From the sequence record PV340856.1: a DNA stretch of 64,000 bases, one strand, 5' to 3'. Numbering within the stretch: position 1 is the stretch's first letter; every line of letters starts with the position of its first letter. A model generated the notes under the pieces. It was not told where the DNA came from and did no database searches. It saw only the letters and a program-made list of their open reading frames with translations. This document shows, piece after piece, positions 2,657-55,698 of the stretch. A program made the translations under genes and the position numbers.

Positions 2657-3931
2657 ATGGCACAGTGGAATAAAAAAGAACAAGACTTCTTGAATCAAGA
2701 GAGAAGTCTCTTTGAGGTTTATAATATCGCAGATCACTGGGGAAACCAAACGGATTGGAGACCTCAGTTTAATGACAATAACAGACTAAAGGTTGCTCCT
2801 TTCCAAACAGTTTTCTTCAATACTTTCCAGTATGGTAAGGAGACTGATGTTTGGGATGAGAGTGTAGTTGGTGTTGCAACTGCTACTCATAATGCCAGTT
2901 CCAGTAATGTGGTTATGGAAGTTGGATCTACTGCTGGTAGTAAGGTTGTCAGACAGACTAAACATGTAATGAGATACATTCCTGGTAGACCAGCAACTCT
3001 CGCATTTGCAATTCGTCTAGAAACACCACAAGTAGGTATTCGCAGAAGATTTGGATTGTTTAATGAGACTGATGGTGCTTACTTTGAGGATGATGGAGGC
3101 ACATATTCTTATGTAATTCGCAGCAGTGCATCTGGTATCACTACAGAAACAAGAGTAACCAGAGAAAACTGGAATGGTGAAAAGTTTGATGGTAATGGAT
3201 ACACTGGTGTAACTGCTGATGCTACAAAACAGCAGATGATTTCCATTAACTATGAATGGTATGGTGCAGGTGCTGTAAAATTTAATTGGTTAATGAAAAA
3301 TGAGACTATTGTTAGCCATGAATTTGAGAACTCAAATGTCAATGATTTAGTTTGGTGTAGAAGTCCATTCCTTCCAATTCGTGTAGAGATTGAGAATGTA
3401 GATGGTGTTGCTGGAACCCATTATCTTTATCAGGGCTCTAACTCTCTTATCCAAGAAGGTGAGCCAGAAAAACTTGGTACTTTGTTGAGTGTCTCAAATG
3501 ACATCACTGGAACAACGATGCCTCTCGCAAACAATTTCTACCCAATCATCAGTTTGCGTCTTAAAACAGATCAACTTCAGGCAGTTATGTTACTGAGATC
3601 TCTGCAGGCAGTAACGAACGATAACACGAATGTCTATTGGAGACTTTTTGAAAATGCAACTTTGACTGGTGCGAATTGGGAAGATCATCCAGATCCAAAC
3701 TCCTTTATGCAATATGATACTACAGCTACTGCAGTTACTGGAGGACAAGCACTTCTTTCAGGATTTACGATTGCTGGTGGTGCCTCTCTGGTTAATGTTG
3801 ATGATAAAGCAGCACTACAAATTGGTAGAAGTGGTATTGGTACAATCAGTGATATATACACACTTGCTTGTGCTTCTCCTAACACCAACAAAAAAGCACT
3901 TGCGGTACTTAACTGGATTGAACAAAGGTAA
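2657..3931 (+). CDS. Conserved hypothetical beta-rich protein, probable virion structural protein
   Basis: 424-aa ORF rich in Thr/Gly/aromatic residues; no catalytic motif recognised. Confidence 0.6.
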   Translation: MAQWNKKEQDFLNQERSLFEVYNIADHWGNQTDWRPQFNDNNRLKVAPFQTVFFNTFQYGKETDVWDESVVGVATATHNASSSNVVMEVGSTAGSKVVRQTKHVMRYIPGRPATLAFAIRLETPQVGIRRRFGLFNETDGAYFEDDGGTYSYVIRSSASGITTETRVTRENWNGEKFDGNGYTGVTADATKQQMISINYEWYGAGAVKFNWLMKNETIVSHEFENSNVNDLVWCRSPFLPIRVEIENVDGVAGTHYLYQGSNSLIQEGEPEKLGTLLSVSNDITGTTMPLANNFYPIISLRLKTDQLQAVMLLRSLQAVTNDNTNVYWRLFENATLTGANWEDHPDPNSFMQYDTTATAVTGGQALLSGFTIAGGASLVNVDDKAALQIGRSGIGTISDIYTLACASPNTNKKALAVLNWIEQR

Positions 3932-3991
3932 ATTTAATTACTGACAATTCTCTAAATAGACCTATAATGTATCGAGTAAATATACTCTTTT

Positions 3992-31682: not shown

Positions 31683-32156
31683 ATGTTTGTATTAGATGAT
31701 TTTTTAACTGATTTTCAGATTCAAAAAATCTATAATAGAAACCTCCCTTATGATCATACCCTCTATCCGAAAGAGGAACTTGAATGCTTTTATCCTTTTT
31801 TTGATGAAGCAAAAAAACATTTTGATTTTTCAGAATGTATTGGTTATGAAGTCTGGAGACAACGCAATCCCCAGAATCTCGGTTGGCATTATGATCATGA
31901 TGAAATTCTTCTTCAAACAGAGGATGTTTTTTCTTGGCCAATATGCACAATTGTTTACTACATAAGAGTATGTGATATTCTTGGTGGTAATCTTCTCTTT
32001 AGAGATGGAACGTCCATCAAACCGTTACAAAATCGACTAGTTATTTTTGGTCCTGGTATTGAACATGCTGTTGATGAAATGTTTACGGTTGATGGACACC
32101 GAGATTCTATTCTCATAAATCCCTGGACATATGAGATTAAAAACCCCGTAGGATAA
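31683..32156 (+). CDS. 2OG-Fe(II) oxygenase (prolyl-4-hydroxylase-like)
   Basis: WHYDHDE...TIVYY...GGNLLF...NRLVIF...EHAV...R.SILIN. Confidence 0.85.
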   Translation: MFVLDDFLTDFQIQKIYNRNLPYDHTLYPKEELECFYPFFDEAKKHFDFSECIGYEVWRQRNPQNLGWHYDHDEILLQTEDVFSWPICTIVYYIRVCDILGGNLLFRDGTSIKPLQNRLVIFGPGIEHAVDEMFTVDGHRDSILINPWTYEIKNPVG

Positions 32157-32165
32157 GGGTTAATC

Positions 32166-32235
32166 CTGCTGGTGCGGATGGGATATATCCCGCCTGGTTT
32201 CCAATTTCCAGTAAAAGAATTGGTGGCGAGCCTGC
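32166..32235 (+). ncRNA. wcaG RNA motif-like structured RNA
   Basis: Two TGGYG motifs; hairpins GGGA-TATA-TCCC and CTGG...CCAG; loop CCAATT complementary to downstream AATTGG (pseudoknot); upstream of an epimerase cluster. Confidence 0.7.
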
Positions 32236-32248
32236 AACCCCCCTAAAG

Positions 32249-48018: not shown

Positions 48019-48079
48019 TTGACAGGATTTACTGACAGTGTTAGTATAAATACATCATCAGGTTACGAAACGTAACAAA
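48019..48079 (+). promoter_or_regulatory. psbA composite sigma70 + late promoter with HLR1-like repeat
   Basis: TTGACA-17-TAGTAT overlapping TATAAATA (48045-48052); GTTACGAA-AC-GTAACAAA at 48062-48079. Confidence 0.85.
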
Positions 48080-48084
48080 TGGTC

Positions 48085-48170
48085 GCTCCCCCTAAACCGA
48101 GACCTATAGGGAGAATAAACACGTCTCTAATACCCACACTGGAGGGTGGTGTGGGAATATCATAACTGTC
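48085..48170 (+). ncRNA. PhotoRC-II RNA motif-like psbA leader
   Basis: CTCCC/GGGAG stem, GAGAC/GTCTC pairing and CCCACAC/GTGTGGG hairpin directly upstream of psbA. Confidence 0.75.
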
Positions 48171-54035: not shown

Positions 54036-54443
54036 ATGGAAGTTTTTAGCTCACCCGAAGATTATCTTTTTAATCTTCACACTTGTTCACCAGGAGAAGC
54101 TAGACGCATATGGAAAGACTCTATAAAACAATCTTTTGATTACAAATGTGCCTACTGTGGGTCACGGGAACATCTCACTCTCGATCACGTTATACCCCGT
54201 TTTGCAGGAGGCACCGACGAAACTAAAAATCTTGTTTGTGCATGTAATGACTGCAATAAAGACAAGTCCCATGAGGACTGGCGCACATGGTACAATAGAC
54301 AGTCATTCTATGATCCCTATAAAGAACAAAAAATTACAGAGTGGCAAAATCAAAACATTGGAAATTTCTCCAATTATATTGAAACGAAGCGGGCAGGACT
54401 AGTCTTGACCCGCAATAATTTTGTCTATAAAAAAAATAAATAA
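54036..54443 (+). CDS. HNH endonuclease
   Basis: CAYCG...TLDHVIPRFAGG...NLVCACNDCNKDKS. Confidence 0.92.
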   Translation: MEVFSSPEDYLFNLHTCSPGEARRIWKDSIKQSFDYKCAYCGSREHLTLDHVIPRFAGGTDETKNLVCACNDCNKDKSHEDWRTWYNRQSFYDPYKEQKITEWQNQNIGNFSNYIETKRAGLVLTRNNFVYKKNK

Positions 54444-54445
54444 AC

Positions 54446-54461
54446 TGTATCACATATTACA
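54446..54461 (+). promoter_or_regulatory. NtcA-box (TGTA-N8-TACA)
   Basis: TGTA-TCACATAT-TACA, an exact consensus match, 7 nt upstream of a -35 element. Confidence 0.65.
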
Positions 54462-54468
54462 TAACTAC

Positions 54469-54497
54469 TTGCCTATATATTCTATAGGGTCTATAAT
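54469..54497 (+). promoter_or_regulatory. Sigma70 promoter
   Basis: TTGCCT-17 nt-TATAAT; predicted start about 54503-54505. Confidence 0.75.
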
Positions 54498-54504
54498 AGA
54501 CCTA

Positions 54505-54737
54505 CGTTCATCCAATGATTAGTTTACTTCTGACATTGACCCTTGCCCATCATAATGACATCAACCCTTATGGGTGGCATATGTCATGTGAAAGGTTCCT
54601 CCAACGTCGTGTGGAGATTCAAATGGATCCTAACCTAGACCAACGGTCAAAGTGGGGTTTAATTGGGTATCTCAAGACAAAGGTGGAAGGTCAATGCGAA
54701 GGAGCTTATACATAGGACGCAAGTAAGTCGCGGAACG
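54505..54737 (+). ncRNA. Glutamine-II (Downstream-peptide) riboswitch-like unit 1 enclosing an ORF
   Basis: CGTTCA-TCCAATG[ORF]CATAGGA-CGCA-AGTAAGTCGC-GGAACG. Confidence 0.6.
54515..54715 (+). CDS. 66-aa secreted-type peptide with Cys pair, nested in riboswitch-like unit 1
   Basis: MISLLLTLTLAH...C25...C61. Confidence 0.75.
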   Translation: MISLLLTLTLAHHNDINPYGWHMSCERFLQRRVEIQMDPNLDQRSKWGLIGYLKTKVEGQCEGAYT

Positions 54738-54740
54738 GAG

Positions 54741-54946
54741 CGTTCATCCTATGATTGAGTTAGCACTATTAGCGAGTCTTAGTCGTGGTCCTCAACTGAC
54801 CTGCACTCAGGTCAGAGAAATTGCAGAAACCGTAGTGGAATCTGACATGACGGATCACGATAAAGAAAGATTTCTATCAAAGTTGTTTGGTAGATACATG
54901 ACGCTGAAGTGTCTCAAAGATTAGGACGCAAACGACTGAAGGAACG
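54741..54946 (+). ncRNA. Glutamine-II (Downstream-peptide) riboswitch-like unit 2 enclosing an ORF
   Basis: CGTTCA-TCCTA(TG)[ORF]TAGGA-CGCA-AACGACTGAA-GGAACG. Confidence 0.65.
54751..54924 (+). CDS. 57-aa secreted-type peptide with Cys pair, nested in riboswitch-like unit 2
   Basis: Own translation MIELALLASLSRGPQLTCTQVREIAETVVESDMTDHDKERFLSKLFGRYMTLKCLKD. Confidence 0.7.
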   Translation: MIELALLASLSRGPQLTCTQVREIAETVVESDMTDHDKERFLSKLFGRYMTLKCLKD

Positions 54947-55005
54947 GGAAAACGGATCCAGCGAAAGCTGAGAAGGTTAACTTTCCATTCATTCAGGTAC
55001 GACAA

Positions 55006-55170
55006 ATGAACACACTTACTATCATCAAAAAGCAAATCGAGAAAGCAGCACGTCTGCATGACGCACAAATTCTTCACACTACATATCGTGGTGTAAAGTA
55101 TGAGTGCAAGCAAGAAGGCGAAGAAGTACATGGTACTTTCTGCTATCGCGGTCGCAACTACAGTAAGTGA
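55006..55170 (+). CDS. DUF4278-family peptide (IF17/GifB-like, YRG motifs)
   Basis: Own translation MNTLTIIKKQIEKAARLHDAQILHTTYRGVKYECKQEGEEVHGTFCYRGRNYSK. Confidence 0.75.
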   Translation: MNTLTIIKKQIEKAARLHDAQILHTTYRGVKYECKQEGEEVHGTFCYRGRNYSK

Positions 55171-55269: not shown

Positions 55270-55297
55270 AAGAGGGGTTGTCACCCCTCTTTTTTTA
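55270..55297 (+). terminator. Intrinsic terminator (copy 1 of a 21-bp direct repeat)
   Basis: AGAGGGGT-TGTC-ACCCCTCT followed by Ts. Confidence 0.85.
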
Positions 55298-55470
55298 TCT
55301 TTACATACTTTGTATAGTCTAGTATACAAAAGATAAGAGTTAATGCAATACGTAGCGATTCCGTCAGAGTTTGCTAACATTTGTCCTATATAATTTACGA
55401 ATTTGGAAAAGTCTTATGAAATGAAACCCCCCAATTTTTATTATATGAAAATTATACGTGGAGGTGGACA

Positions 55471-55670: not shown

Positions 55671-55698
55671 AAGAGGGGTTGTCACCCCTCTCTTTTTA
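55671..55698 (+). terminator. Intrinsic terminator (copy 2 of the 21-bp direct repeat)
   Basis: AAGAGGGGTTGTCACCCCTCT, identical to 55270-55290. Confidence 0.85.

Follow-up and report, generated by a model that had tools for sequence, protein, structure and literature searches.

A conserved NtcA-type box precedes a small-gene operon with glutamine-riboswitch-like elements in Synechococcus phage Sf-FS3 and related cyanophages

The DNA that we analyzed (the window) comprises the final 64 kb of the genome of Synechococcus phage Sf-FS3 (PV340856.1), a T4-like cyanomyovirus from a sponge with WH8102 as its host of isolation. A palindromic TGTA-N8-TACA box lies in this window in front of a sigma-70-type promoter and three small genes, homologues of gp196, gp197 and gp198 of phage Syn9, which are interleaved with two RNA units resembling glutamine riboswitches (Table 1). 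The gp196-like protein has a hydrophobic N-terminus, and hundreds of phage contigs carry a conserved copy. An HNH endonuclease gene precedes the box, and its stop codon ends 3 nt short of it; in relatives this place is taken by nrdB/gp195, JmjC, SAM decarboxylase, petE, or other genes. The operon is closed by an intrinsic terminator, the hairpin of which recurs in near-identical form (AGAGGGGTTGTCACCCCTCT) at 55270-55291 and 55671-55694, so that two successive small-gene units end 400 nt apart in the same way. Contigs over the operon are present in four metatranscriptomes, showing that it is transcribed. The alignment of one RNA contig identical to Sf-FS3 starts at 54514 and leaves its first 10 letters unaligned; the contig would begin at about 54504 if these were colinear, which is compatible with the promoter, as a weak indication. 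No metatranscriptome contig covers 54323-54486; the upstream DNA is strain-specific, and contigs cannot define transcript starts.

Table 1. Features of the operon and its upstream region in Sf-FS3 (positions in the 64-kb window)
Feature	Position	Strand	Remarks
HNH endonuclease gene	54036-54443		Insertion separating the carbamoyltransferase gene from the box
NtcA-type palindromic box, TGTA-N8-TACA	54446-54461		TGTATCACATATTACA; core GTA-N8-TAC 54447-54460; half-sites GTA 54447-54449 and TAC 54458-54460
-35 hexamer of sigma-70-type promoter	54469-54474	+	TTGCCT
TAnATA element (candidate late-promoter core)	54474-54479	+	TATATA (CTATATA from 54473); inside promoter spacer, 13 nt past the box
Hairpin/palindrome	54488-54502	+	Conserved; -10 hexamer in loop
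-10 hexamer	54492-54497	+	TATAAT
Riboswitch-like unit 1, 5' strand	54505-54513	+	CGUUCA and UCC
gp196-like ORF (66 aa)	54515-54715	+	Inside unit 1 stem loop; unannotated in the GenBank record
Riboswitch-like unit 1, 3' half	54715-54738	+	GGA-CGC ... GGAACGG
Riboswitch-like unit 2, 5' strand	54741-54749	+	
gp197-like ORF (57 aa)	54751-54924	+	Inside unit 2 stem loop
Riboswitch-like unit 2, 3' half	54924-54948	+	
gp198-like DUF4278/IF17-like peptide gene	55006-55170	+	
Intrinsic terminator	55270-55299	+	Closes the operon

An earlier, sequence-only reading of this DNA had pointed to the palindrome and to TTGCCT and TATAAT hexamers separated by 17 nt, and both are present exactly as described. Within the window there are three matches to TGTA-N8-TACA against 1.35 expected, a number that 20 of 100 shuffled sequences reach, and promoter-like sites in the region are not enriched (8 found, 10.7 expected). 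For the core pattern GTA-N8-TAC, 18 matches were found and 9.6 expected, an excess of roughly twofold over shuffled sequence, but 15 of these matches lie within ORFs (14 in ORFs of at least 80 aa and one in a small annotated ORF); we do not read the enrichment as a sign that functional sites are numerous. The significance of the box comes from comparison across homologous loci and not from the statistics of the window.

This comparison used 12 GenBank cyanomyophages together with IMG/VR contigs carrying the gp196 gene, 86 distinct upstream regions in all. Of these loci, 78 have an exact GTA-N8-TAC, and six more have, at the corresponding place, a box with one mismatch; conservation in related phages, a check that the sequence-only reading had proposed, is thus seen at the same place in 84 loci, the box being absent only from Syn9 and one contig. 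The logo over the box is AAAnTGTATCAnAtgWTACA, with 1.7-2 bits in the GTA and TAC columns and 0.3-1 bit in the inner columns. Mean pairwise identity is 0.976 for the half-sites versus 0.535 for N8, and the loci include 56 distinct 14-mers, 55 distinct N8 sequences, and 45 unrelated upstream contexts. Invariant GTA and TAC around a free N8, with upstream genes that change, are the signature of a protein-binding site rather than of inherited sequence. Judged from this comparison, the box is very probably a real, selected operator of the NtcA type. Other identities considered for the box were rejected: it is AT-rich, which speaks against a terminator; conservation ends about 6 nt upstream of it, which speaks against a divergent minus-strand promoter; and it is general among these phages, the HNH gene accompanying it only in Sf-FS3 and in two near-identical contigs, which speaks against a target of that endonuclease.

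The sigma-70-type promoter is conserved with the box. The -35 hexamer is TTGACT, TTGACA, or TTGCCT in 65 of the 86 regions (46, 12, and 7, respectively), and the -10 hexamer is TATAAT in 48 and TATACT in 16. Their spacer is 17 nt in 72/86, even where the -35 hexamer is displaced by 5-6 nt relative to the box, and 7-9 nt separate the end of the -10 hexamer from CGUUCA, the first bases of the riboswitch-like RNA, in 81/86. With conserved hexamers at 17 +/- 1 bp and a fixed distance to the first structured RNA element, the sigma-70 promoter is, on sequence grounds, itself under selection. Placing the -10 hexamer at -12 to -7 gives a predicted start at about 54504, one base 5' of the CGUUCA that opens unit 1. 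Relative to this start the box centre (54453.5) is at -50.5 in Sf-FS3, 9 bp upstream of the canonical -41.5 and close to the 10 bp estimated previously. Among 81 loci, the box centre is at -50.5 in 52, at -44.5 or -45.5 in 21, and at -48.5 in five, and the gap from TAC to the -10 hexamer is 31 nt in 52, 25-26 nt in 21, and 28-32 nt in eight. The activating arrangement TAC-N20-23-TAN3T, with its centre at -41.5, is absent from all 81, and a consensus -35 hexamer is present. The position of that hexamer varies from 1 to 9 nt past the box, with the spacer sequence rewritten; in the main class the gap is 8 nt and the box does not overlap the sigma-70 hexamers.

The palindrome that carries the -10 hexamer in its loop has a mean MFE of -6.3 versus -1.7 for shuffled sequences, and its arms covary (for example GGTCTA/TAGACC, GCTATA/TATAGC, and GGAGT/ACTCT). 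There are 32 G.U pairs, and the plus strand folds better than the minus strand; the hairpin may be the 5' stem-loop of transcripts that start further upstream. In the host promoters described below, the corresponding hairpin, immediately 5' of CGUUCA, would come from the palindromic NtcA box itself.

The promoter spacer also contains a TAnATA element that had gone unnoticed in the sequence-only reading. It begins 13 nt after TAC in 77/81 loci, whatever the gap between the box and the -35 hexamer, and is the only rigid partner of the box. The region is thus read here as two overlapping units, namely the box with TAnATA and the -35/-10 promoter with CGUUCA. The similar heptamer CTAAATA occurs ten times on the plus strand of the window and once on the minus strand, six of the ten plus-strand copies being 24-78 nt before gene starts; positions include 3952, 8713, 26330, 54007, and 55708. 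CTAAATA probably serves Sf-FS3 as its late (gp55-type) promoter core, and by its likeness to this heptamer TAnATA is a candidate T4-type late-promoter core, with a predicted promoter activity. The box centre would be at about -32 relative to the presumed start of this putative promoter. We rejected the idea that a box followed by N13-TAnATA is a general architecture in cyanophages, as none of the remaining GTA-N8-TAC boxes (443 when both strands are counted, or roughly 220 sites) shows it in 746 kb of the phage loci. The pairing is therefore specific to the gp196-gp197-gp198 operon.

The riboswitch assigned to this operon in the sequence-only reading is invisible to Rfam but reappears, split by whole ORFs, when the conserved cores are located directly. 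Neither RF01704 nor RF01739 matches the region, even at E<=10, and none of five phage genomes has an Rfam glutamine riboswitch above the cut-off. The cores CGUUC, CGC, and GGAACGG, however, are at 54505, 54718, and 54732 and again at 54741, 54927, and 54941. In unit 1 the triplet after CGUUCA (UCC, UCU, or UCA) and, about 207 nt further on, the one that precedes CGC (GGA, AGA, or UGA) are compatible with pairing in 73/73 loci, 72 by Watson-Crick pairs and one with a U.G wobble. This covariation indicates a fold-back stem enclosing the whole gp196 ORF. The unit 2 cores flank the gp197 ORF in the same arrangement; their triplets are invariant (UCC/GGA in 69/69 loci scored) and give no covariation support of their own. 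In some relatives the gp197 ORF is replaced by a short loop, which yields contiguous units lacking an ORF, and such short-loop forms are also present in RNA contigs. The ORF-less unit 2 in L156 reaches the RF01739 threshold with 36.4 bits; host loci score 42-75 bits for RF01704. A phage-type promoter with riboswitch units, in some cases without enclosed ORFs, is also seen in L153, L166, L170, L171, L149, and L156, contigs that are binned as Synechococcus, Prochlorococcus, 'Euryarchaeota', and other MAGs and that are probably phage DNA in these bins.

The gp198-like protein is a weak match to DUF4278. Against the Pfam profile (PF14105) it scores 19.8 bits (E=0.001), below the cut-off of 25.3 bits, but it matches host peptides linked to glutamine-II riboswitches with a blastp E value of 8e-6 and shares YRG repeats.

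Promoters of these host genes were represented by 36 canonical glutamine-II riboswitch loci of the host family (L174-L214), of which 33 have a perfect NtcA box, typically TGTAGCAACAGCTACA. In 22/33 the box starts 6 nt past the -10 hexamer and covers approximately +1 to +14, the position of an operator over the start. Nineteen of the 33 have an additional, imperfect GTATC-N6-GAAC upstream of the -10 hexamer, near the activating position of -41.5, at a distance of 21-25 nt (22-23 nt in 16/19). Host glutamine-II promoters thus often mix activator and operator geometry. Operator-type control by NtcA was inferred for MED4 by Klahn 2018 (PMC6212724), and in Synechocystis activating NtcA sites are at -41 to -44 whereas repressing sites are spread between -69 and +83 and cluster near -30 (PMC5714215). 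Since the phages use neither host arrangement, they have not simply copied a host promoter. The box is placed neither like the host operator nor at -41.5. The caution of the sequence-only reading about the sign of regulation was justified. The amt1 and glnA promoters of five host genomes contained too few exact boxes for a host matrix.

Regulators of the CRP family (HTH domain PF13545) are absent from five phage genomes and number 1-6 in the hosts. We accordingly rejected a phage-encoded CRP- or NtcA-like regulator, and the box is expected to be read by a host protein. Starting from the observed box, its conservation, and its geometry, we infer both which protein binds it and the sign of the regulation. 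The palindrome would bind a dimeric regulator of the CRP family, with 2-oxoglutarate-charged NtcA of the host as the most likely candidate. In this way the C/N status of the host would modulate transcription of gp196-gp197-gp198, while the two glutamine-riboswitch-like RNAs would separately gate translation. The suggestion that the operon reads nitrogen status twice is partly supported, insofar as the site is selected and of NtcA type and an NtcA box is paired with a glutamine riboswitch in host homologues, too. Since the hosts have several CRP-family proteins, others than NtcA are also candidate readers.

Repression of the operon under nitrogen starvation through an NtcA-type operator would be the best explanation of these data, although we hold it tentatively, with something short of even confidence. 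In nitrogen-starved cells NtcA would lower transcription by binding just before a sigma-70 promoter that is strong and needs no activator; relative to the overlapping TAnATA (late-type) promoter, it would be bound about 32 bp ahead of the presumed start. In nitrogen-replete, glutamine-rich cells the promoter would be free and the riboswitches ON, so that the IF17-like peptide could be made. We lean towards this sign because near-consensus -35 and -10 hexamers at 17 bp in 72/86 loci should make an activator unnecessary, because the host homologues are under operator control, because repression is coherent with ON-type riboswitches, and because a site at about -32 of TAnATA resembles the repressor site of gifA. 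Repressor sites like those of gifA, gifB, and the host IF17-like genes overlap the -35 hexamer, the -10 hexamer, or the start. In gifB, repression and an ON-type riboswitch form one coherent signal (PMC6212724). Three features argue against repression. The box ends 8 nt before the -35 hexamer in most phages, a weak position for steric repression; a constant 13 nt between the box and TAnATA would be more usual for activation by contact than for occlusion; and 21/81 box centres, at -44.5 or -45.5, are at the edge of the activating range.

The last two features belong to an opposite reading, in which NtcA activates and nitrogen stress (high 2-oxoglutarate) raises transcription from the sigma-70 or from the TAnATA/gp55-type late promoter. 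Because sigma region 4 is missing from the gp55 holoenzyme, there would be room for an activator one turn nearer, at about -32, and together with ON-type riboswitches activation would constitute an AND gate for a nitrogen-starved host that experiences a glutamine surge during infection. The coupling of box and TAnATA over N13, kept in 77/81 loci although the spacer is rewritten, fits this reading, as do the class at -44.5/-45.5, not far from where induced genes have their sites (-41 to -44; PMC5714215), and the window's own example of canonical geometry elsewhere (3928-3941, TAC-N21-TATAAT). Sullivan 2010 also proposed that cyanophages exploit NtcA-driven nitrogen-stress promoters (PMC3037559). 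Activation nevertheless appears unlikely, if still a serious competitor, given the full consensus -35 hexamer, two spacing classes half a helical turn apart relative to the sigma-70 promoter, the absence of the canonical N22 spacing, the operator geometry of the host homologues, and the absence of another N13-TAnATA pairing among the roughly 220 other sites. In a separate model the box and TAnATA, as a gp55-type late promoter, would be one unit, with NtcA acting directly, phase-locked and from about -32, on a late transcription complex without sigma region 4; we consider this improbable. If true, host C/N status would help to set when, or how strongly, a peptide that targets glutamine synthetase is expressed in the late phase. 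We know of no host nutrient regulator that has been described as acting on a T4-type late promoter.

The palindrome might instead be a GTA-N8-TAC look-alike bound by another dimeric factor, either a different host CRP-family protein or an unrecognized phage protein. There are up to six CRP-family HTH proteins per host, the geometry matches no known mode of NtcA action, and the phage consensus GTATCA..WTAC differs from the host operator GTAGC..GCTAC. The invariant positions are, however, exactly the GTA and TAC at N8 that define an NtcA site, the five phage genomes have no CRP-family HTH domain, and the regulated genes are homologous to host genes linked to NtcA, so that we give this alternative only a small probability. 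That the box has no regulatory function, and was inherited or arose by chance as a palindrome in AT-rich DNA, agrees with a box count within chance expectation in a single window, but is made highly implausible by half-sites so much more alike than the N8 between them, by the variety of the 55 N8 sequences and 45 contexts, and by the fixed position.

The closest known systems are host gifB (IF17 of Synechocystis) and the IF17-like DUF4278 genes of marine picocyanobacteria, which also combine GTA-N8-TAC, a glutamine-riboswitch leader, and a DUF4278 peptide (PMC6212724). By analogy, the phage operon would respond to the same two nitrogen signals, 2-oxoglutarate at the DNA level and glutamine at the RNA level. 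It differs from the host IF17-like genes, in which the box is over the -10 hexamer or the start, by a box upstream of a full -35 hexamer at -50.5 or about -45, and by riboswitch units that are doubled, each enclose an ORF, and escape detection by Rfam. With canonical NtcA class II promoters it shares perfect half-sites in an intergenic position upstream of the -10 hexamer; those promoters, however, have N22 to TAN3T, a centre at -41.5, and no -35 hexamer, whereas the phage gap is 31 or 25-26 nt and the -35 hexamer is of consensus type.

NtcA sites have been predicted earlier in T4-like cyanophages by Sullivan et al. 2010 (PMC3037559) and Gazitua et al. 2020 (PMC8115048), on the basis of this motif and likewise with the view that phages use the nitrogen-stress regulator of the host. 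Those predictions were pattern matches in single genomes, 1-16 per genome, and were read as activating; the present site is conserved across a group, tied to one operon, and in a non-canonical position. We found no prior description of the conserved site or of its geometry in the searchable literature. Among the proposals of NtcA exploitation made since 2010 on the basis of pattern matches, this is the first candidate found with demonstrable selection: about 98% of related phage loci, from oceans around the world, retain it. The site precedes an operon that has predicted glutamine-sensing RNA elements and a last gene resembling a host glutamine-synthetase inactivating factor. With a single 16-bp target, one can test if phage expression responds to the nitrogen status of the host and with which sign. 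In work from 2012, Zeng and Chisholm reportedly demonstrated by experiment that host PhoB activates cyanophage pstS through a Pho box. The two cases are alike in that the site for a host nutrient-stress factor precedes a phage auxiliary gene, and differ in that the one described here concerns nitrogen instead of phosphate and is known from sequence alone.

Several other elements were observed in the window. The intergenic GTA-N8-TAC at 3928-3941 has activating geometry, with 21 nt to TATAAT at 3963-3968 and CTAAATA at 3952 in between, and precedes SfFS3_171 and a plastoquinol terminal oxidase/dehydrogenase cluster. Rfam matches include a wcaG RNA at 32140-32237, a PhotoRC-II RNA at 48073-48168, before psbA, and five tRNA genes between 27545 and 30590.
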